Assembly (NCBI RefSeq): GCF_052425735.1
Contig: NC_135758.1
Span: 26,040,001-26,104,000 of the forward strand
DNA: 64,000 bases
Origin: Oculina patagonica
Taxonomy: Eukaryota
Reading direction: 5' to 3'
Part shown: one piece after another, positions 1 to 13,336 of the stretch
How the letters are laid out: each line of letters opens with the position of its first letter
Numbering within the stretch: position 1 is the first letter of the stretch
Made by a program: the position numbers and the translations under genes
Notes under the pieces: model-generated
Seen by the model: only the letters and a program-made list of their open reading frames with translations
Database searches by the model: none
Told to the model about the DNA's origin: nothing

Positions 1-334
1 AAATTAAAAAATTTAGTACTTGTGGGTTTAATACCTATTCATTATGGCTTTAGACAAAGGTTCCGACAATTTTTCTTGCAGATGTCGCGCTAATTAGTTG
101 CGTAGTTGAATTTTTCATTTTAGCGAACTATTTTTACCCTAGTGCACACGTTGCATTAAGAAACGCCACACAAATATGCAGGTTTAGTCATGTACGGACA
201 TGCTTCCCATTCCCATTTTTTGTTTCCGAATCCCAGTCCCAGTGACCTAAATCCCATTTTCCCAGTGAAAAAATAGGCAAATCCCAGTCAAAATAGGCAA
301 ATCCCAGTTCCCATTTTACCCCTTCAGGACCCTC

Positions 335-580
335 TTTTAAGTTGATTGAGTTTCTACTTTGTGCTAATGAGTTATCCTTTACTAATATGTCAGTTCTTAA
401 AGAGTTTCTGTCGAGTGTTGGTCGCTTTGATTTTTTAAAAAAGTTGAAACGAGTCGAGTTGCGTATCTCTATTGGAAGCATTTTAGAGTGTTATGTTCTG
501 CGTAAAGGTAGTTCTGATATGAAATATTTTGATTGTTATGCGAATATCGTTGAGTTTTTGCTAAGAACCCGAGAAGAATA
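335..580 (+). pseudogene. B-family DED-Bcl-2-like fragment (B-psi0), truncated at both ends
   Basis: LIEFLLCANELSFTNMSVLKEFLSSVGRFDFL...YANIVEFLLRTREE closely matches the B1 protein encoded at 25417; there is no start and no 3' half. Confidence 0.8.
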
Positions 581-848
581 CGGCGGAGAGACCGAACAAA
601 TGCATGACTAGCCTTTTATATCCAAGAATTGCAAACAAACACCCTGATAGGGCATTGCTATCTGTACGACGAAACCACGGCAACAATAGTCTAAAGATAA
701 GCACGCAAGGCATGCAAAATCATTTTTAGATGAAGAGGAAGTTTCTCTCCCAGGCGCAGCGATCCTTTTGATCAGCACTCAGAGCCAGAGTCCTGGGACG
801 ACAATGATCATGCGCACTTCCTCTATCCTCCTACGTAAATTTACAGTC

Positions 849-1270
849 ATGGCGTTGCTACCAGAAATAAATGAAAGCGTCCTTTTCACCTAAGTACTGC
901 TATTGAAGGGTCCGGTTGCTTTCAAGTTGTTTGTGATCAAGCGTGTTAGGTCATTACTCATCGATAGGCGAGAGGCAATTAGGCACTGCTGTATTGGGTG
1001 TAGGTCTGGAGTCGATGTTAGGTGTAATCATATAGTGATGTTCAGATTTATCGAGTTTTTGTATAGTGATGCGCATGCGAACCCTTTCAGAAGACACTCA
1101 GACGTATTTTATTCGAAATTCAAGAATCTGATTGGTTCTCCCACTGTTAGGAGATCATATCAAGTTAAAGCCCGTGGATTAATTTCGACAAGGCACAAGT
1201 AGTAACGCAAAAATTCTGGAGATTTTGGATAGCGCGATTTTGACTTCTCATTTATTGTCAGTAGTCTTGG
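849..1270 (+). pseudogene. Decayed B-family copy (B-psi1)
   Basis: ATGGCGTTGCTACCAG start, preceded by sequence homologous to the B2 upstream region (29500-29750); frameshifts, stops and deletions follow; 1205-1260 matches the B exon-1 LEILDS segment. Confidence 0.75.
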
Positions 1271-1349
1271 TGAATTTTTATTATTAAGGACACTTAAATA
1301 ATGACTTCTCAACTCGAAAGGACGTGTCACTAATCACTATTCCGTAAGA

Positions 1350-1621
1350 CTACAACCTTGGAAAAGACTGTTGAAACACTTAGCAAATTTCCACTAATTT
1401 AGCTAACAGAGTTCAGTTTTGCACCCCTCCCCCCTCCCCCATTTCAATGTTGTTAATGCTGTAGTGCTTTTAAACCAAAGCCTGTCGAACCGCAAACCCC
1501 AAGACACAACATTGAGTAGGGGGAGAGGGGGATAAAATATTTTTACCCGCTTACAGTTCAGGATATTTGTGAAAAATGCGTGAAATGCGTTTGTTTCAAC
1601 TAGTTTTGTCCAAGATTGTAG
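1350..1621. mobile_element. MITE-like element with imperfect TIRs; a second copy lies at ~48927-49203
   Basis: Ends CTACAACCTTGGAAAAGACTGTTGAAACA / TGTTTCAACTAGTTTTGTCCAAGATTGTAG; internal sequence shared with the 48.9-kb copy. Confidence 0.6.
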
Positions 1622-2159
1622 GTATGTTTAACGAACCGCCCTGACAGTGACAAACCTCAGCGAAAAATAAAGCATCTTTAAAAAGCTTTTTTGTGAATGA
1701 GACCATAAATTATTATATCTGAGGGGTGTTTCTAGGCTAATTGAAACAATAACAAGACACTGTTAACGTCGCATCTTTTATTGAAAGTTCTCTAATGGTT
1801 CATTAACATAACATAACAATCTATAAACATTTTACGACGAGTCCTTTTATTATATTTGTTTCAACTCAGTTTGACATAAAAAAATATCCATTTTGTTTGC
1901 ACTTGGGTTTGTTCAATTCTTTGTTACGCTTTGTTTCTTTGTTAATATTTCGTAATTCTTTCAATTATGCCTATATTCCTCTTGTTTAAGATTTTAGGTC
2001 TTTTCAATGCCTTGTTTTTAATTTTTTATATTTTTTTCGACTTTTATATTTTTTTAAATTATCATTGTTGTTGTTGTTGTTGTTTTGCAAATTTCCTTTA
2101 ATTTGCTGTTGTCTAGTTATTTTAAGGCACTAAACACTCGCCTTATAACGTTTTATTAT

Positions 2160-2330
2160 GCCGTTGTCGCTTAGCTGCAGTAGAACTGCATTACCAGGGT
2201 TACGACGAGGACGTGCGACATCCGACTTGGTGGTAGAGTCTATGACCTGGTGGGTATTTTGTGGCACTAACAAGGTACGCTCGGTAGCCGCAGTGCACCA
2301 CACCCAGACCCATTTCCACCTTTCAACCCC
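2160..2330 (-). ncRNA. HDV-like self-cleaving ribozyme (copy 1)
   Basis: Minus strand: P1 GGGGUU/AACCCU, long J1/2, P2 UGUCGC/GCGACA, P3 ACG/CGU, L3 UCCUCGU, P1.1 GG, P4 UGCAG/CUGCA, J4/2 GCUAA containing the catalytic C (2174). Confidence 0.85.
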
Positions 2331-2387
2331 ATGTATAGAGTCAGTCTGTCTGTTGGTTAGGTCTTGTAAGTCTTGGATGGACTGTTA

Positions 2388-2538
2388 AGGCCGATTTACA
2401 CGGTACAATTTTGTCGCGTGCGACATGCTTACGACACGAATTGCGTCGTGTAAATCGAACCTACAACTCGCTTACGACTGTCGTAGGCGTGTCGTAAGCT
2501 TGTCGCATGCAACAAAATCGTACCGTGTAAATCGGCCT
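2388..2538. mobile_element. PIF/Harbinger-type palindromic MITE
   Basis: TIR AGGCCGATTTACACGGTAC / GTACCGTGTAAATCGGCCT, long internal palindrome, TTA target duplication at 2385-2387 and 2539-2541. Confidence 0.8.
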
Positions 2539-2574
2539 TTAGTTGTATTTATTCATTTTTCACTTTCTCAAAGT

Positions 2575-2694
2575 TTATATGGCATCTTTAAATTGTTTAA
2601 CCACTTCCGCTCTCCGCTGCTTTTGCAAGGACAAGCTAGTGCTGGACTCCGTGTTCTGAATGGACTTTTCCCTCACATGAGTACAGAAATCTTC
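2575..2694 (-). CDS. A1 DED-Bcl-2-like protein, exon 2 (EDFCTHVREKS...AEVVKQFKDAI*)
   Basis: ttcgcag acceptor, phase 0, homologous to exon 2 of the other A genes. Confidence 0.85.
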   Translation of the reverse strand, partial: EDFCTHVREKSIQNTESSTSLSLQKQRRAEVVKQFKDAI

Positions 2695-3994
2695 CTGCGA
2701 ATTGAACCAAAGGAGATTTAAGTATTTATTTTAAAACCATTATATTCCAATTGTAAAACGTTTAGTCAATGTTGCTATATCTTGAGTGTCAGAGTTTTTT
2801 TCGAAAGCGAGCCATGACGGATTGGCAAAATAATAGACTTGTTAGCAATGTAAGGTAAAGCAAATTCTTTAATCAAAACGTTTTTCGCTGGCCTCTCTTG
2901 CATCGTTGTTGTGGCTTATACAGTTGGGGATAAGTGCCAGTTTTGGCAAATTTTCGTTGAAGCACTCGGAGAGTTTCCGAATTATTTCATCCAATCAAAA
3001 ACTAGCGCGAATGCACACGAGTACTTCGAAAGCAATCGCGCAAGCAAATAAGTCATGTTGCTAAACAACTTTCAATGAAAACCGCGGGCTCAGTCGCTTC
3101 TCGGAGGAGTGATGTCGCAATCAACTGGCACTTGTTCCCCCGACTGTACAGTTCTTGCAGTGAAAAAAGCAGTTGTCTCCCAAGGGTAGTGTAGCTGAAA
3201 GTGGCACATGCGATGCATTTTTTTTAATTATTATTATTTTTCTCGATGTATTTGGCATGTGCAAGAAGAAGCAGTTGTATGAAATTTGACAAAAATCACA
3301 GCATACAACCACCAACAAGTACCCAGAGTGTTCTTCGAGTTTGTAAGAGATTTATTATTATTATTTTATCCCTTTGGTAATATTAGTTCCGGGGAGGGGG
3401 CAAGGGGTACTACTTATATACGCTTTAAGGGTATGTGACGTTGGATCGGGTCCAATTTTGAACCTTCCATCAGGCCTGTGATGGGGTTCCAAATTTCGCC
3501 ATCCGTCTTAGATGGGGTAGCTAAATGGGGGGATTTAACGTAAAATTTATATATTATTGCTTATTTAACCAGGTAGTTTTGCAATGTGCTAAACTAAATA
3601 TCTGATGTTTAAGTACTGTATAGAAAATTTAAAAATATAAACGTAAACTTCACTTTCGGTCTGGGATTGGGTCTACAATTTAACTCTTCAATCTGAGATG
3701 GAGTAATAAATTTAAGCTTTTCTTGGTCTGAGGAGGAATAGGGGTTTCTAGACACCAGCAGAGCACCAGAATCCAACTTTTGTCAAGTACCATTTCCCCC
3801 ACCCCCACCCCTCCGCCCCAATTGGGTCACCTGTCGCCGTACCTGTTAAATTGGAGCCAATATTATCATCATGCATGCCGTGAATAATTTATATATGTCA
3901 AAAGACAAAACACTCTACAGCGCTCGGGGCGTCGCCGCTTATAGAAGAGTAAATTATCTTTTAAACATTTGTTATTTGAAACTGCGTAACTTAC

Positions 3995-4672
3995 CCAATC
4001 TCCTAGTTCCATCATTCGAGAGCAGAGCTCATCAGCCGCAGTGACACACAGCTCCACCATCGGTTCTTGTCGTTCTTCGTTCAAGGAGGCGGCAGCTATG
4101 ATTTCTCCAGCAATAATAACAAGCAAAGTAAATTTACTCCACGACGTCAGTTCTGTGCAGTCGATTTCCTCTTCAAAATCCACCAACTCTCTCCTCATCT
4201 CTTTACTCGATTCCACTGCAAAGCTGATCTCTGTGATGTCAACTTTGTCTCGAACGATTTCTCTAAGTCTCCCTAAATACCCAGCTACTCTTTTCACGGC
4301 TACAGAACAACAAAGTAACTCCGATTGTAGAATTTTCCTAGCATGGAAATCCAGAAGTAGTGTCAGGTCCCGCTTGATTTCAAACTCGGTCAACTCTTTA
4401 ACAAGATCGATTCTTCCTATATCATGCATAGCTTGTTTCACTAAATTTACATCTTCCCACGATATCTTTCCCTTGTACTCCAAAGAACGTAATATGTCCA
4501 TAGATTTGGTAGCGTGTATCGGAATAAGTCCATTACAGTAAAAACGAAGCTTTTTTAGATGTTCTTTATCCAATTTATTAGAAATTTGTAGTAATACACC
4601 ATTATAAGATACTAAAAGTTTGTCAGTCACAGTCAAAGTTAACGTTGACATGTCTTCAGAATTCAGGTTCAT
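3995..4672 (-). CDS. A1 DED-Bcl-2-like protein, exon 1
   Basis: DED with GRIDL (RxDL) motif, then BH4-like and BH1-like segments; ends ELGDW|gtaagt; start is 4672 or 4651. Confidence 0.85.
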
Positions 4673-4916
4673 CAGTTAAGTTTGCAAGCAAACCTTCCTT
4701 CAATCCTCTTACGTCTTCCAAGGAAATCATCCCAACATGTACTAATGAAGTAAAAATGGCTAAAAATCCGATTTCTTCCATAGTAGCTTGTTTACATCTA
4801 GAGTAGTTGGGTCGAAACTCTTGCTTCTGAGCTTGATCCAATTTACGGGCAATCTTGAGCAGAACCATCGCGTAACTTTGTCGAAATTTATTAATATTAT
4901 CCGCGAACTCCATCAT
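4656..4916 (-). pseudogene. Extra partial DED overlapping the A1 start out of frame
   Basis: FRQSYAMVLLKIARKLDQAQKQEF...LVHVGMISLEDVRGLKEGL aligns with the A-family DED; lacks the RxDL helix. Confidence 0.65.
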
Positions 4917-5810
4917 TGTTATCCATGGCGCAGGAACAAAATGAATGCATAGCTGAACGGCAAATGTTTAATATAAGCACGCAAGGCGTGCAAACTATTT
5001 TTGATATTAAATCTTGATTCACTGTCCAAAATCCACGTGCGCAATTGGTTAAAATAGATCACGTGATTTTGCTTTACCTGTCGACCGCAAACTCCGACAG
5101 TGCAGTATTGACAATAACGCATAAAAATCATGCATTATTGAAAATGTCTTCAGCTTCAAGGCTTGCAGAAGTGAAAGAAAAATATATTCCTCAAATTATC
5201 AACGATCCAATACCAAACAAAATCGAAGAGGATGACAACTTGAAGCGCTTTTATGTTCAAAGGTAGCTCAATAAATATATTTTTGTGTGCAATTGACTTG
5301 CTTGTTGCTTGATTGCGAAAGCCATCGACTTGCTTTGAACAAGCTTCTTGCTGACTGTATTTATGAACGACCACAGCTGATGAACGATTTTATGAACCAT
5401 TTTTATGAACTTCAAACATTATTGTTTGAAGTTCGTTAAGTCTATGATCACTTTCAGTGTACTCAGATTGTATATTAAAAGGGTTAGAGTCTGTCCGTTC
5501 GTGCTTTGTTGACAAATACACGCACTTGCTAGCCTCACAATGAGCTCGACTGAAATTTTCAATACTGCACTCGACTACGCCTCGTGCAGTATTGTAAATT
5601 TCGAGCTCATTGTGAGGCCAGCAAGTGCGTGTATTTGTCAAAAAACATTCACAGCAGTCTCTAACCCATAATCAGACGACGAGGAAATCTCGTGCCCGGC
5701 GACCGCAATCCTTATGGTCAGCAACAAAAAATTGGAAACTCTGGGATCACTCTTGGGTCGGGGATGAACATGCGCAGTTCTTCAAACCTCCTGCTGGTAA
5801 ATTTTCAGTC

Positions 5811-8345
5811 ATGGCGTTGCCACCAGTAATTTCTTAAATGAAAGCGTTCTTTTCACCTGTGCACTACATGTTAAAGTGTCAGGTTGTTTATTTGGAGTCT
5901 GTAATTAATCGTGTTAGATCATAACTAATCGCTAAGCGGGAGGCATTTAGCACTGATGAGCTGAGTATAGTTCCGGAGTCGATGTCAGATGTCAACGTAT
6001 AATGATGGTGATATGTCTAGGTTTATCGAGTCGGAAAACTTGAACTCTATCGGATTCTTATTATTCGACCAAAACTAACGGCAAAACAGCGAAAAAATCA
6101 ATTTCGGCACGAAAATCTTACGGGAGCGATTTTTGGACATACCGGACCGCACTAAGAGGCAAAATAAGCACCGGTGTGCTGGGTATAGGTTCCGAGTCGA
6201 TGTTAGATATCAACATATAGTGATAGTGATATGTTCAGGTTTATCGAGTATTTGTGTAGTGTTAATAACACTTGTTAGAATTGAAGACACTCAGACGTGT
6301 AAAAGTTTTAGTTGAAATCCGCAAATTTGATTGGTCGCACACTGTTGGAAAATCATGTCATATACCCGTGGAAGCAGGAGGGCATTTTGCGTGCGCATGC
6401 GTCGATATGGGCTAGTGCGCACGACAGAGAAGTTCTGCTATCGATTGTTTACATATTTTTCACAATTTATGGCCTAATTTTCAGCTCAAAATAAAAGGTG
6501 TTTTAAGTTTTATTTGCTGTATACGATACTAAGAGTCCTTGCTTTATCTTCTGACAACAACAAGCATACTTTGGTGTCGGCGTGCCGTTTATCTGATCGA
6601 CTTTGGCTATGTGTATTAAACATTGCGCGTGGACAAAATGGCGACCGAATGTCGAGAACCTAAATACCTTGCCCATGTTTTTAATAGCTGGGAGATCTAA
6701 AAAAAAAGCGCTACGGCTACTTAGTACTAAAATATAAAACAGCAGTTTTAACTATACGATGTTATAATCAAGTATCCCGGGTTTGAGCGAGTGGTCATGA
6801 TTTTGTTCAGATTTTTCATAAAACTGCAATTTCATCGTTCTCACAATGCAAAAATCTCAAAATCTAACCTTGATCTCCAGCGTCTACCGATGATATATGG
6901 AGCCTGAAGTACTTGAACTATCGTCTAATGCTGCGAAGGTAGCGTTAAAAAATGGTCTATTGTGGTAATTTTTACCTTTCTTTAACGTGCGTTCTCGCTG
7001 GTTTATTCTAACAGAGAAACTATCGTTTGTGATTATTTCCTTAAACTTAAGCATTGGTCAAAATAACTTCACATTTCGATGTACCACAATTATTTCGTTG
7101 AACAAGAAAAGAATTGCTGAGATCGGTCTTAATTTTAAAGTGTTATGGTAATTCTTTGCTGGTAGACTATTTGTTTACATTTTACTATGTTAATTAGTAC
7201 ATTTTTGGCTCCTTTATCAAAATCTAGCCTTGATCACCAGTCAAAAAATAGCATGAAACGAGCAAGCGATATATATATATTTCAGAAACGTTCTAATAAC
7301 TGCTGCATAAAATGTCTTAAGAAATAATTTTTAACTATAAACAATGTTATTTTCAAATTTTCATTCAATGTTTGTTTCTTTAAGATTGATGTTCGTTCTG
7401 TTATAACGACTGTTTTACTTCTATGTCGCCTAAATGTGATTTAAAGAACTGCAGTTCTTGTTCCAGGAAACCCTGTTTGCCAGTCGAGGGCAAGCATTGC
7501 TTTAGAGTCATCAGTGAGCTGCATTATCATGTGCAGAACACCCAAACATGTCTTTCCCCTCAGGGAAAACCCTTTTCTTTGGTGGCCGTCCCTTTAGGCA
7601 AAAAATCTCCCGACAAGCTATAATATTGCTCGCACTCTGCCTGTATTACAGCAATTGATTTGATGTGAAGTTTTGATCCTAATATATCACACTCCAGCCC
7701 ACGAATAAATGTTTTCCTCTTTTTACGGCTTGTTTGATTTTTGTCGGTGAAGGCTTTCCTACCTGTCCCACATATTTTCCCATTATTTGCAACAACGATC
7801 CCGAAGCAGGCCAAAAAATCTGCTTTATAAGAGCCTTGCCACACACAAACACTTTTTCTTAGCGAAATTTGCGTCTATATTAAATTATGTGACGATAAAC
7901 AGTACAAAAAGCAAAGTTTGAATCTTCCGCGCCATTTTTATTCCCAAGATCACGCGGTCTTTGTACAGCGGTTGCACGCATGCGCCCGCAAAATGCCCTC
8001 CTGCTACCCGTGGATAGTTTCCGACAAGGCACAAATAGTAACGCAAAAATTCTGGAGTTTTTTAAAAGCTCCATTCTGACTTCTCGACTATGGTCAGTGG
8101 CCTTTGGATAAAGCTATTTGACACTTAATGAATGGTCCGAAGTAAACAGTTTAGTTTGTTACCTGAGAATCTAGATGTTTCCACCTCGAAAAACATTGAG
8201 ATTAGACGGAAACAAAACTAACTGGTTTTCCAAAAATTCTGGAGATTTGGATAGCGCGATTCTGACTTATCAATTATTGTCAGTAGTCTTTGGTTAAAGC
8301 TGTCAGTTGTATGCTTCGTTCACCACTCAATTTAGCAGAGAATAA
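5811..8345 (+). pseudogene. Decayed B-family copy (B-psi2), internally duplicated and split by a TIR element
   Basis: ATGGCGTTGCCACCAG start followed by an early TAA; B-like pieces at 5811-6030, 6150-6360 and 8015-8345. Confidence 0.7.
6373..8005. mobile_element. 1.63-kb non-autonomous DNA transposon with 9-bp TSD (Mutator/Merlin-like)
   Basis: 30-bp TIR AGCAGGAGGGCATTTTGCG(T/G)GCGCATGCGT; ACCCGTGGA duplicated at 6364-6372 and 8006-8014; empty site in the paralogous segment at ~1170. Confidence 0.85.
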
Positions 8346-9404
8346 AGTCATTAAACGATCCCGGTGACAAAGACAAGGAACTACAATAAAAGAAGCTTCT
8401 TTGTGAATGAAACCATAAACAATTACATCTACGGGGTGTTTCTAGGCTACTGGAAATAATAACAAGACACTGTAAACGTCGCATCGTTTATTAAAAGTTC
8501 TCTAACTGATCACTTACACAACATGACAATCCATGAGCATAGTACGACAAGTCCTCGTGTTTTATTTGTTTCCACTGTTTGATATAAAAAGTATCCATTT
8601 TGTTTGCACTTGGTTTTGTTTCAATTCTTTGTTACGCTTTGTTTCTTTGTTAATATTTTGTAATTCTTTCCATTATGCTTGTATTCCTCTTGTTTACCTT
8701 TTAAGTCTTTTTCAACACCTTGTTTTTTCATTTTTTTGTTCTTTTATTTTTTCGTTTTTTATATTTTTTTAAATTATTATTGTAATTTTTGTTGTTGTTA
8801 CTGTTTGTTGTTGTTGTTGTTGTTTTTTCGTAAGTCGTTTTAGTTTTCCTTGCTTCAGCTAGTGGAATGGAGATAATTCTTAACATGTTTCAACTGTCAT
8901 TTGTTTTACACTGTTATCAGCGTACTTCAATACATAACGTTTCAACATACTAAACGATCTTAATTATTCAATATTCACTATTTTCTCTTGCTTCTTTTTC
9001 AATTTTTTTTCAATCTTTTTATGTTATTCACCTTTTTATATATTTTTTCTGTTCTTCAGCTCCTCCTCCCCAAATAAGGAAGGGGGCCGTTATTATTTTT
9101 CTTTTTTGAGTGAGCTTATGTTCACTTCGTTGTGTCAGGTATCCCATCGACTCTTGTCGAGTGCCTGACATGCTGCTGCCTTTTAGCGTAATGTAGTTAG
9201 ATGTCACCTGGAATACTGCTGACCACTGGGTTCAGCCCAGTTGAAAGGTTCTCATTTTCTGTTAACTTTTTACGGTATGATGAAGAGACTGGCGTCATGC
9301 CAATCCCCCAACGTAGAGGAACTGGGATTTCCTTCTATAAGTCGCTGTGTTCCGTTAATTTAAGGCACTAAACACTCGCCTTATAACATTGCATTTTGCA
9401 TTTT

Positions 9405-9569
9405 GCCGTTGTCGCTTAGCTGCAGTAGCACTGCATTACCAGGGTTACGACGAGGACGTGCGACATCCGACTTGGTGGTAGAGTCTATGACATGGTGGGA
9501 ATGCTTGCAAGGCACAACTGGTAGCCTCAGTGCACCCCACCAAGACCCATTATACCACCCTTCAACCCC
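9405..9569 (-). ncRNA. HDV-like self-cleaving ribozyme (copy 2)
   Basis: Same nested double-pseudoknot core as copy 1; only the P4 loop and J1/2 differ; G1 at 9569, catalytic C at 9419. Confidence 0.85.
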
Positions 9570-9620
9570 GCATAAACGTCGTGTAAGTCATGTTAAAATT
9601 CGATAGAACGTGAGTTAAAA

Positions 9621-9743
9621 TTATTCATCTATACTTGATAGAATATCTGTCAGTTGTTGAACCACTTCTGCTCTCTGCCTCTTCTGCAAGGACAAGCTAG
9701 GATTGGACTTCATGTTCTGTCGAACTTGGGCACAGAAGTCATC
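9621..9743 (-). CDS. A2 DED-Bcl-2-like protein, exon 2 (DDFCAQVRQNM...EVVQQLTDILSSIDE*)
   Basis: tttacag acceptor, open frame, homologous to the other A exon 2s. Confidence 0.85.
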   Translation of the reverse strand, partial: DDFCAQVRQNMKSNPSLSLQKRQRAEVVQQLTDILSSIDE

Positions 9744-12664
9744 CTGTAAATAAATTTTAAAAAAGGATTAATTCAGAGGAAAAATATCTGTTTGCAGTTT
9801 GTGAGTATAAAACCTTCAAATAAAGGCTTTGTGATGCAAGTGCAAACGGTCTACCCACTGAGTCATATATGTAGCTATTTGGAAGGAGCCGACAGTGCTT
9901 CGAAGTTCCGCATATATCACAAAGACACATGAGTTAAAATGCCATTGGAGCTAGCCTCACTTAATTTAAAAGTTGATTTCCTCTGCTAACTGCGAAAATT
10001 ACTTCCTGAATTAGGAAATTTCTGCGCGAGAGATCGAATTTTTGTTCCGCTGTCGAGATCATTATGCTACATTAACCTACAATTAACGACGTTTTTGACG
10101 ATTTTCCAAAGATTTCCGACCGTTTCCCGATGATTTCCGAAGATTTTCAAAATGTTGTCCGAAGGTCGTAAAATGTTTCCTAACATTTTCCGAACTTTTC
10201 CAAAAATTCCGAAGATTGCCGAGGAAGATACGAAGATGTTTCGACCTAATATCGATAAACTTTGGTCAAATGAGCATTAAATGAGATGATTGGTCAATAA
10301 TGATATCACACATGTGCGGATATCATTTTTGGGATGCCTAAAGGCATCCTAGTTGTTTACAGGGTGCGTGTGTATTTCCCTTGGGAATGAGGATAATTGG
10401 ATTAACAACCGAAATAACCAATAACAGCATCATATATTGGTCCCTTGGGTGTTGGGCAAACAGGTTTTGGCAAGGTTGGCTTAAATTGTGAGGAATTGAG
10501 GAAAACAGGTTTTGATGCGAAAGACAAGGAAATTAGTCAAATGCATGAACTCGAGGATAACTGGTTTTGCAAGGTGATTGATGGATTGTTTCTATTTTTG
10601 TGTTCAGCTGCGTGTAAACAAAAGCGCTTAAAAGTTCCTTTCAATTAACCCGGGAATTAACCGCCCGAACTAGCTAACATCTAAATTATTCAGTTTCAAT
10701 TGGACTCTCATTCCTCGTATCGTTAGAGCGACTGGCGGAAATGCGTTGACTATGCCAATATGATAAGCAAAAGCGATTTATTTTGGTATTTTCCTTCGTG
10801 AAAGCTAAAATTCCTTGCCGTTCCGTCAAATGTCTACACTTTCAGTGCGTTGCTAATTAAATTAGCTAAATCAGTTACATGCGGCTGACTTTTTCCAATA
10901 ACATTAAATCAATATACAGTACTGCATGTGTCTTAAAATTTAAACAAAGTTTTATTAACAAAAGAGTGTTTGTTTGACTTAAGTAAACTGTAGTAAAAAA
11001 TACTCGTGAATTAAGACGTTTTTCGCCACTTTTGTGTCTTACGTGATGTCTGTTGAAATTTAATTAACAATAAAGTAAACACGCAAAGAGCTAGCTTTAT
11101 ATTTTTCGCTAATACATCGCTTAATTCAAACTTTAAAAGCATTGTAGTAGCTAAAAAATTTCAATATTTTTGGGGGTCGATAAGGATTATCCTTTCGATA
11201 TTTGAAGAACATGAAAAAAGAGTTTGTTCGCCTTCAGTACAACGTGTTGACAGCGTTCTTCTATTTGGATAGTAGACATGCTGTGTAAATAGTTCACATC
11301 GAATCCAAAACAAAACGTTTCGTTCCTCATGAAACCAACCTTACAAAATGCTTCCCGAGAAAAAAATTCGTTTTCTATTGGAGGAGGTTGCCACTCGCTC
11401 ACCGGTCGCCATATATAAATATAGTTGGCTACCAATTCCAAGAAATTTCTCCGAGTTTAAGTCTTTTGTCGATTTTACTTTTTTTCGCTCGCAGTGAGAA
11501 GTGCCGAGATTGAGACATGCACTTTACCCGAGGGACAATAAGAGGGAGCCTTATCAGGTTCTGCACCGTGGTACTCCTCTTTAGTGTGTTGTAAAGGCAC
11601 CTTGAATTAATTTATTGAGATGTCGTTCATGTTTACGGTCCTTCAATGTTCTCAGTTTTAAAAAAACTTACCCTGAACTATATCAGTGACTATATCCACT
11701 GTTGCCCTTACCATAAAAAAAAAACTATAACGGAACTCTTCCGACCAATGTAGTCTACGGTTTATTATAAAGCATAAAACATCTTTACGGCATCCCCATT
11801 TGTTGCTACTTTTCCAGCAACAAATCTACTTGTTATTAATAATCTGCTTTAGTTTATTCCTGGACTAGGCGGAAACTGTGCTCAGACTATGAGATGAAAC
11901 AGGAACCCATTGCCTGGATGAAATTAGGCCTAGATAAGGCGATTGATAGAACTTAGGTAGATTTTGGCTACGGTTATATAGAGATTGGGATAGGGCAAGA
12001 GAATATGTGGCGCTTTATCTAATAAACATTTTGGGATTTGGAGGATCAATGCCAGAGGTTACGGTTAAATTTTGGACAGTAATATGCATTTTTTAGAAGA
12101 AAAAAATGTCGATGAAAGTGAACAAAATTCTACATCGACCGTTAACGGAAGGGAAGGGCGCAACGAGGAAGCCGGGAAAGCAAACCACGGCGGGGAGGTG
12201 AAAAAATAAAAAAATTCGCTAGAAACACCGGATTCTTTGTTATGGCTCAGCCTTCTCTTTCAGCTGCCAGCCGCCACTTCTGATAAATAATTAAACGACA
12301 GACTGCTTCTTGTGGCAAGAGATAAAAGATGCTAAATATTTGAATATACTGATTAAAATAAAATACAAAATCGCCCGATAATTCGGTTCAACGGGGAATC
12401 AAACGGTGGTAAGCAGCATCTGCATCAAAATCGAGTGCCACCGACCAATCAGTACATCATGCACAAACTTTTGTTTCCATTTAGCGATCGCTAAAATATT
12501 TTCAGCCTTGGACCCGTTTTCTTTCGCTTTCGTTTTGGATCATCGTACAAAGACTGTGTGGCGTGAGAAGACAAAATTCGCAAAATACAGTGCTCGGGCC
12601 TTCGCGGCTCAATCAATAAGTAGAATGATCACCTTAAAAATTTGCCATATATTTGTTAGCTTAC

Positions 12665-13336
12665 CCAGCTTCCCAGTTCCGTCATTCGAGAGCAGAGCTC
12701 ATCAGCCGCAGTGAAACACAGCTCCACCATCGGTTCTTGTCGTTCTTCGTTCATGGAGGCGGCAGCGATGATTTCTCCGGCAATGATAACAAGCATAGTA
12801 ACTCCTCTCCACGAAAACGTCAGTTCTGTACAGTCGATATCCTCTTCAAAATCCACCAACTCTCTCCTCATCTCGTTACTCGATTCCACTGTAGGGATGA
12901 TAGCTGTGATGTCAACTTTGTCTCGAACGATTTCTCTAAGTCTCCCTAAATACCCAGCTACTCTTTTTACGGCCACAGAAGAACAAAGTAAATCCGATTG
13001 TAAGATTTTCCTCGCATGGAAATCCAGAAGTAGTGTCAGATCCCGCTTGATTTCAAACTTGGTCAACTCAGCAACGATGTCAACTCTTCTGATTTCATGC
13101 ATAGCATCCTTCACGAAATTTACGTCTTCCCACGAGATCTTTCTCTCGTGCTCTAAAGTATGTAATATGTCAACAGTATCAGTAACGTTTGTCGGGACAA
13201 GTCCGTTGCAGTATTGACGAAACTTTCTCTGGTGTTTTTTACCCAAATTAAATGAAATCTGTAGTAAAACACCATTGTAAGTTTGTCTCAGTTTGTCAGT
13301 CACAGTATGTGTCGAAGGTAACATGGCAGATGCCAT
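12665..13336 (-). CDS. A2 DED-Bcl-2-like protein, exon 1
   Basis: DED (RRVDI) plus Bcl-2-like region; ends ELGSW|gtaagc; ATG 13336 lies downstream of the TATA box at 13387-13393. Confidence 0.88.

Follow-up and report, generated by a model that had tools for sequence, protein, structure and literature searches.

HDV-like ribozymes have been described at the 5' ends of the non-LTR retrotransposons R2, RTE, Baggins and L1Tc (Eickbush, 2010; Ruminski, 2011; Sanchez-Luque, 2011; all via the review PMC6765202), and their position at the head of RTE and other non-LTR elements is established (PMC6765202). The CPEB3 ribozyme is an HDV-like ribozyme conserved in a mammalian intron (Salehi-Ashtiani, 2006, via PMC6765202), and a discontinuous hammerhead ribozyme is found in the 3'UTRs of the rodent Clec2 genes (Martick, 2008, via PMC6765202). 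In the present work we describe an HDV-like ribozyme that lies behind the stop codon of a gene of the coral Oculina patagonica, within a stretch of 64,000 nucleotides (RefSeq assembly GCF_052425735.1, contig NC_135758.1, forward-strand positions 26,040,001 to 26,104,000) that is referred to below as the window and whose numbering is used throughout. To our knowledge, the animal self-cleaving ribozymes conserved in host genes are very few, namely CPEB3, a few intronic hammerheads and the Clec2 3'UTR hammerhead, and most of those known to us are of obscure origin.

The coral ribozyme resembles the 5'-end ribozymes of non-LTR elements in its double-pseudoknot fold and in a cut site that coincides with the first base of the element, and it shares with the R2 and RTE ribozymes in particular a long J1/2 extension. 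The dispersed copies in the O. patagonica genome match these systems exactly, since they belong to an RTE with endonuclease and reverse transcriptase and to its mini-derivatives. In contrast, the three copies that we call A0, A1 and A2 head no retrotransposon; they occupy the 3' region of a protein-coding gene of the host, are without progeny, and are conserved at both orthologs and paralogs of this locus in different coral genomes. They are similar to CPEB3 in being HDV-like ribozymes fixed in position within a host transcript and in having a presumed regulatory role. However, CPEB3 is intronic, compact, devoid of a long J1/2 insert and of obscure origin, whereas the coral copy follows a stop codon, carries a J1/2 of 103 nt and has a traceable RTE origin. 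As in Clec2, the ribozyme would reside in the 3'UTR of paralogous host genes, where a cut would part the ORF from the poly(A) and is here predicted to lower expression; unlike the coral ribozyme, that of Clec2 is of the hammerhead class and is built from two distant segments. Hence, the ribozyme class and its link to RTE were already known, and what is new is an RTE ribozyme copy that follows a host stop codon and that selection has apparently retained in several paralogs and species. The explanation that we consider the best, and on balance probable, is that an RTE-derived HDV-like ribozyme has been kept by the host behind a DED gene and would cut itself there.

Identification and fold of the ribozyme

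The strands of P1, P1.1, P2, P3 and P4, which together make up the nested double pseudoknot, were all located in A1 in the canonical order (Table 1). By its fold, the segment is a genuine HDV-like ribozyme, and self-cleavage is predicted from it. G1 at position 2330 forms with U2196 the G-U wobble that closes P1, and this pair was a G-U in 10/10 aligned sequences. The equivalent of C2174 was unchanged in every gene-linked and RTE copy that was aligned, and only the two positions following this C in J4/2 vary (U/A, then A/G). P1.1 is formed between the L3 cytosines and the GG that follows P1', with C-G at both pairs in 19/19 genomic and 10/10 cross-species sequences; because these pairs do not vary, there is no covariation at this helix.

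Table 1. Coordinates of the ribozyme, its parts and the neighboring features of the A1 locus, together with the other copies of the array.
Feature	Position	Strand	Remarks
Complete HDV-like ribozyme (by fold), A1 gene copy	2330-2165	minus	Every class element, canonical order; coordinates verified
P1 5' strand, GGGGTT	2330-2325	minus	7th pair at G2324 optional
J1/2 insert, 103 nt	2323-2221	minus	Long imperfect hairpin by MFE fold
Catalytic core, 56 nt	2220-2165	minus	P2, P3, L3, P3', P1', P1.1, J1.1/4, P4, J4/2, P2'
P2	2220-2215	minus	
P3	2214-2212	minus	
L3	2211-2205	minus	
P3'	2204-2202	minus	
P1'	2201-2196	minus	
P1.1 strand, GG	2195-2194	minus	
P4 hairpin	2190-2176	minus	
J4/2, GCTAA	2175-2171	minus	Candidate catalytic cytosine C2174 (HDV C75 equivalent)
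P2'	2170-2165	minus	
Predicted cut	between 2331 and 2330	minus	5' of G1 (2330)
Hairpin 3' of ribozyme, AAGGC/GCCTT stem	2144-2124	minus	RTE 5'UTR inheritance; 100% paired, 10 sequences
Ribozyme copy A0	10 kb before the window (L013, L031)		
Ribozyme copy A2, paralogous, behind A2 gene	9569-9410	minus	More RTE 5'UTR kept downstream than in A1
A1 exon 1	3994-4672	minus	226 codons, DED domain; GT donor at 3993; homologs with PF01335 DED
A1 exon 2	2575-2694	minus	39 codons plus TAA stop 2577-2575; translation
MITE, 151 bp	2388-2538		About 20-bp terminal inverted repeats, 3-bp TTA/TAA target duplication
AATAAA	2553-2548	minus	23 nt after A1 stop, upstream of ribozyme
Second AATAAA	2157-2152	minus	8 nt after ribozyme 3' end; A1 lineage only
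Third AATAAA	1851-1846	minus	About 315 nt downstream of ribozyme

Two sets of sequences were used for evaluating the proposed helices. Among 19 genomic copies, 96.6% of the pair cells contained standard pairs, as compared to 27-51% when the 3' partners were slid. In 10 cross-species sequences, consisting of copies from three genomes and the RTE, the helices were 93.4% paired overall, and P1, P1.1, P2, P3 and P4 were each paired at 100%. The basal stems of J1/2 were also kept in this set (87-100% paired), while its apical helix reached 73% and is variable or deleted in other copies. The fold is further evidenced by compensatory changes among the 19 genomic copies: U-A to C-G (in 4 sequences) and G-C to A-U in P3, and C-G to U-A in P2. 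Altogether three double-changed pairs were observed against 0.9 expected from shuffles, and the variation in P1 and P4 was of the wobble type only. The nested MFE fold of the A1 RNA displayed P1, P4 and the J1/2 hairpin, and the energy of a fold constrained to contain P2, P3 and P4 was close to it.

A search with the Rfam HDV-family models gave no match at the gathering score over the whole window and none at E values up to 10 over positions 1-12000. The J1/2 insert of 103 nt is the likely cause of this miss, which we take to reflect a limit of the models and not to speak against the fold. Elsewhere in the region, a palindromic hairpin with a C-rich and a G-rich arm (1422-1534) gave weak mir-4433-like Rfam matches on both strands, with E of about 5-6, and RNA-run contigs at high depth were seen at 1500-1621, overlapping this hairpin.

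A 29-nt word from the core has exactly two occurrences in the window, at 2186-2214 and 9431-9459 and both on the minus strand, where 0 would be expected by chance. The initial annotation had described A1 and this 9.4-kb copy as sharing a core with a single change in the P4 loop; our alignment agrees, as the second P4-loop base (T versus G) is the sole core difference. The extensive divergence that it had reported for the J1/2 of ~100 nt and for the flanks was likewise found, with 16 mismatches and 10 gapped columns in J1/2 and flanks that are largely unalignable between A1 and A2. The predicted cut, placed earlier at ~245 nt after the A1 stop, is 244 nt from it.

Origin from an RTE retrotransposon

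A total of 28 matches to the ribozyme were found in the genome of O. patagonica, with ~25 core hits. Most of the matches form a young family whose members are 96-99% alike and in which homology starts at G1 and runs downstream. The locus L029 (66-3509) holds a full-length element of 3444 nt that is flanked by a 15-bp target duplication and contains one ORF of 1039 aa with the domains Exo_endo_phos (AP-endonuclease), RVT_1 (reverse transcriptase) and DUF6451. RTE-clade elements are about 3.3 kb in length, with a short 3' end and a simple-repeat tail. The single ORF with AP-endonuclease and reverse transcriptase and the target-site duplication at L029 are those of the RTE clade, and judged by its sequence this element is an RTE-type non-LTR retrotransposon and the source of the motif. 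Neither this origin nor the MITE described below had been noted in the initial annotation.

The target duplications of L029, L003 and L005 put the first base of the element at G1, which is the predicted cut site, demonstrating that the RNA that was reverse transcribed began at the predicted cleavage site. From these natural junctions we infer that the ribozymes of the family cut at G1 in vivo, a statement that concerns the relatives of A1 and not A1 itself. Many of the genomic copies are short derivatives, in which the first 320-500 nt of the RTE are joined to its last ~40 nt. Nine loci (L003, L005, L006, L009, L010, L012, L014, L017 and L021) are non-autonomous RTE derivatives, with junctions that differ by copy and with target duplications of their own. 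At L008 and L015, an RTE 3' end in reverse complement directly precedes G1 of the ribozyme; two copies thus lie there in inverted orientation, 3' end against 5' end. The full-length RTE of L029 was inserted about 380 bp upstream of an ORF for a rhodopsin-family 7TM receptor (L029:3888-4550).

The A1 copy keeps only about the first 240 nt of the RTE. In both A1 and A0, only about 65 nt are kept beyond the ribozyme, including the hairpin that follows it, and low-complexity sequence comes after. Neither blastn nor tblastn detected remnants of the RTE ORF behind A1 or A2.

Ancestry of the gene-linked copies

A0, A1 and A2 make up a tandem array on contig C1, and each follows, in sense orientation, the final exon of an A-type DED gene. 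Their flanks are homologous. All three have a C-G pair in P3 and an A in J4/2, neither of which occurs in any dispersed copy, and among the 25 genome-wide core hits the C-G subtype of P3 is confined to the array. The homologous flanks and the shared P3 pair hence trace the three ribozymes to a single ancestral insertion, which was copied along with the gene. That the copies are independent insertions of an abundant repeat, an explanation raised in the initial annotation, was rejected on the same grounds, considering also that the genome contains just 25-28 copies.

The same data bear on whether the gene-linked copy serves the element instead of the host, acting as the master of a non-autonomous mini-RTE that would use the host promoter, be released by the ribozyme and be mobilized in trans. 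The genome does contain many RTE derivatives made of the 5' 320-500 nt and the last 40 nt, and RTEs are known to depend on transcription by read-through (PMC6765202). However, the absence of the diagnostic P3 C-G from all dispersed copies indicates that the gene-linked copies left no progeny in the O. patagonica genome. Moreover, A1 and A0 are without an RTE 3' tail, and a locus-specific retention across species is unexpected for a selfish master copy; we therefore hold such an element-level function to be highly improbable and return to a ribozyme kept by the host.

To locate A-type genes in other assemblies, exon-1 homologs were searched for with exon 1 alone as the query. Assembly GCA_044670265.1 contains gene-linked ribozymes that are the orthologs of A1 and A2 together with an A0-type copy, the ENA assembly ERZ25067872 contains two on one contig, and a Tara metagenome scaffold contributes the ninth copy. 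The distance from the stop codon to the start of the ribozyme is about 50 nt in most gene-linked copies. A search that included three regex patterns, all of which matched the controls, found no ribozyme downstream of the A3 lineage or of the more distant A-type genes, which are those at L036, L037, L038 (Desmophyllum pertusum) and L040-L042.

The array is a mosaic, in which different segments group the paralogs differently: A0 goes with A2 in exon 1 (3994-4672, 12665-13312 and L031:3045-3692; dS of 0.20) and with A1 in having lost the RTE sequence that follows the hairpin, and three J1/2 substitutions unite A1 with A2. A 13-nt deletion in J1/2 is common to A0, the Tara copy and one of the ERZ25067872 copies. 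These patterns probably reflect recombination or gene conversion among the array paralogs. The mosaic also lends some weight to the idea that the cores are identical owing to homogenization, either by gene conversion among the tandem paralogs or by conversion from active RTE copies. Yet at one P4-loop position the base differs among all three O. patagonica cores, which shows that no recent copying took place among them; conversion cannot account for identity across species; and active RTE copies differ from the gene-linked ones in the P3 pair and in the J4/2 base. Homogenization is thus very improbable as the cause of the core likeness, and retention by the host continues to be the reading that we prefer.

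The A1 3' region and its transcripts

Within the A1 gene, the position of the intron is supported by a spliced RNA contig from an A-type paralog. The features that set A1 apart from its paralogs are an earlier stop codon, the 151-bp MITE, and the AATAAA motifs at 2553-2548 and 2157-2152. The MITE is located between the A1 stop and the ribozyme, thereby making up 151 of the 244 nt from stop to cut. It is absent from A2, A0 and the copies of other species except the A1 ortholog of GCA_044670265.1, where it is present, and an RNA contig of run X4 displays the empty MITE site. Many RNA contigs align at 2421-2542, and these come from other MITE copies. The first AATAAA, to which the initial annotation had drawn attention as a possible earlier mRNA end, is indeed present; it is kept in the GCA_044670265.1 ortholog of A1 and is replaced by other letters in the MITE-free, A1-type X4 contig. 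RNA-run contigs that fit the region downstream of A1 show other letters at 2150-2157, and hence represent alleles or paralogs without the second AATAAA.

The MITE and one AATAAA now separate the A1 stop codon from the ribozyme, and some of the A1 mRNA may hence end before the ribozyme is reached; the motif at 2553-2548 could end the A1 mRNA of O. patagonica about 200 nt before the ribozyme. If the mRNA does end early, the A1 ribozyme would act on read-through transcripts only. A separate observation concerns the A1 intron. At positions 2904-3137, each of the four RNA-type runs reached a very high summed contig depth (about 1,800-4,200), and many loose ends were seen at 2926-2931 and 3146, so that this segment looks like a highly expressed repeat.

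The RNA evidence was obtained from assembled contigs of public runs, which show neither ends nor local depth. In one X4 contig, splicing has occurred precisely at the A-type intron (TGG/GAT junction), and the contig runs on via the 3'UTR into the ribozyme. The splicing establishes that this run is RNA, and the mature mRNA of the paralog therefore contains the ribozyme. A second X4 contig is continuous over 2193-2365 with four differences, bridging the cut site, and it joins 2556-2625 (the end of exon 2) across the empty MITE site; a third contig covers 2093-2222. The bridging of the cut site demonstrates that the ribozyme is transcribed and that uncut RNA exists. Contigs of runs X5 and X9 on 1819-1988 reach to about 1780-1820, past the AATAAA at 1851-1846. 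Considered together, the X4, X5 and X9 contigs suggest a long 3'UTR with the ribozyme inside, though contigs map no RNA end. In the two runs labelled organism A (X1 and X5), taken as O. patagonica on account of the species label that they have in common with the best DNA source, no contig was found over A1 exon 2 or the A1 J1/2 at a likeness of at least 90%.

Conservation of the catalytic core

From the two window copies, the initial annotation had suggested selection on catalysis after duplication, and it had proposed comparing the divergence of core and J1/2 across copies as a check. Every helix was found to be kept in the nine gene-linked copies from four coral genomes. In eight of these, from three genomes, 6/56 core columns were variable: three in the P4 loop, two in J4/2 (at the N and R positions), and one in P1', where an A-to-G change converts a U-A pair of P1 into U-G. 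Over the same eight copies, 36/82 J1/2 columns were variable and 27 more were gapped (Fisher p = 2.6e-5 for core versus J1/2). P1 and the core taken together had 7/63 variable columns versus 36/45 in the immediate flanks, comprising 15/15 upstream of G1 and 21/30 beyond the hairpin (Fisher p = 2e-13). The J1/2, 3'UTR and downstream flank of the gene-linked copies were 20-45% diverged or unalignable, and the divergence of J1/2 and flanks is roughly the synonymous rate; for exon 1 of the A0, A1 and A2 paralogs, dS was 0.20-0.32.

When the Tara copy was compared with A1, its exon-1 dS was 0.44 and its J1/2 contained 24 mismatches and 15 gaps, and yet all 63/63 positions of P1 and the core were identical; the probability of 63 unchanged sites at the J1/2 mismatch rate is about 2e-9. 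Conversely, the old dispersed copies had deletions or insertions in the core (P3', P2, P1' and J1.1/4), and none of the gene-linked copies did; differences of the dispersed copies were counted against a majority-rule reference over the first ~170 nt of 16 such copies. Between A1 and its GCA_044670265.1 ortholog there was 1 core change versus 5 in J1/2, a comparison too shallow to show constraint since the MITE insertion.

A near-invariant core amid a diverged J1/2 and diverged flanks argues for selection on the catalytic fold. The suggestion of selection after duplication is hence supported and now extends from two copies to nine in four genomes; purifying selection appears to act on the fold of the gene-linked ribozymes, and catalysis itself is predicted from that fold.

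These results need to be weighed against the view that the ribozyme is a neutral fossil, a dead RTE fragment that was carried along by gene duplication and whose core likeness is due to short time or chance. In line with a fossil, the RTE body is gone without ORF remnants, a MITE is adjacent and an AATAAA lies upstream, uncut RNA exists, and the comparison of A1 with its ortholog is by itself non-significant. Neutral decay at the rate seen in J1/2, the 3'UTR and the downstream flank would nonetheless be hard to reconcile with a core that is near-invariant in nine copies from four genomes, that has changed only where the fold tolerates changes, and that is free of the disabling lesions which dispersed copies of similar age have gained. 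A fossil is accordingly a very improbable account of the locus.

A further view grants the host a use for the motif and denies the catalysis. The fold could be a structured RNA in the 3'UTR that binds a protein, enhances translation or blocks an exonuclease and that cuts weakly or not at all. For the HDV-like ribozymes of retrotransposons, roles in promoting translation initiation and in binding an element protein have been proposed (PMC6765202), uncut RNA is abundant, and the hairpin downstream of the ribozyme is conserved too. On the other hand, no variation is seen at the catalytic C, at the cut-site G-U or in P1.1, an invariance that a pure structure would not obviously need. We regard a non-catalytic role as unlikely, and it is the hardest of the four rival explanations to set aside. 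The reading that we retain is that the host probably uses the motif as a ribozyme, with cutting of the mRNA as its predicted action.

Proposed history and implications

In the history that we propose, an ancestral A-type DED gene would first have received an RTE copy, in sense orientation and about 50 nt behind its stop. Tandem duplication of the gene with its insert would then have given rise to A0, A1 and A2, with counterparts in at least three other coral assemblies, and the retrotransposon body would have been lost while purifying selection kept the ribozyme and the hairpin following it. Transcription of an A-type gene would read through the ribozyme, and the RNA would fold and cut 5' of G1. 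A 2',3'-cyclic phosphate would then terminate the coding part, which would lack a poly(A) and is expected to lose stability or to be translated less, and the ribozyme would form the start of the downstream piece. In this way, cutting would lower or tune the expression of the DED/Bcl-2-like protein, or would make a non-polyadenylated 3' end. What the data show is the fold of the ribozyme, its origin and ancestry, its conservation and its transcription; that A-type mRNA is cleaved, and with what effect, is something that we infer.

A more far-reaching proposal is that an RTE ribozyme has been domesticated by stony corals and serves, from within the 3'UTRs, to tune or destroy the mRNAs of a family of DED/Bcl-2-like cell-death regulators. 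This we advance tentatively, as a possibility in which our confidence is less than even. If it were true, retention of the ribozyme would span a synonymous divergence of about 0.4, and cleavage efficiency would set the share of surviving mRNA for each paralog, possibly being modulated by the J1/2 arm, by upstream inserts and by cellular conditions.

The locus offers a traceable route from an active RTE, still resident in the same genome, to a motif retained by the host. Several paralogs and species serve as natural replicates, and the MITE insertion, the J1/2 deletions and the upstream poly(A) signal provide natural variants for the comparison of cleavage and expression, so that the host role of a genomic HDV-like ribozyme is directly testable. 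The host genes unite death-effector with Bcl-2-like parts, and the ribozyme may therefore be relevant to how corals control cell death.
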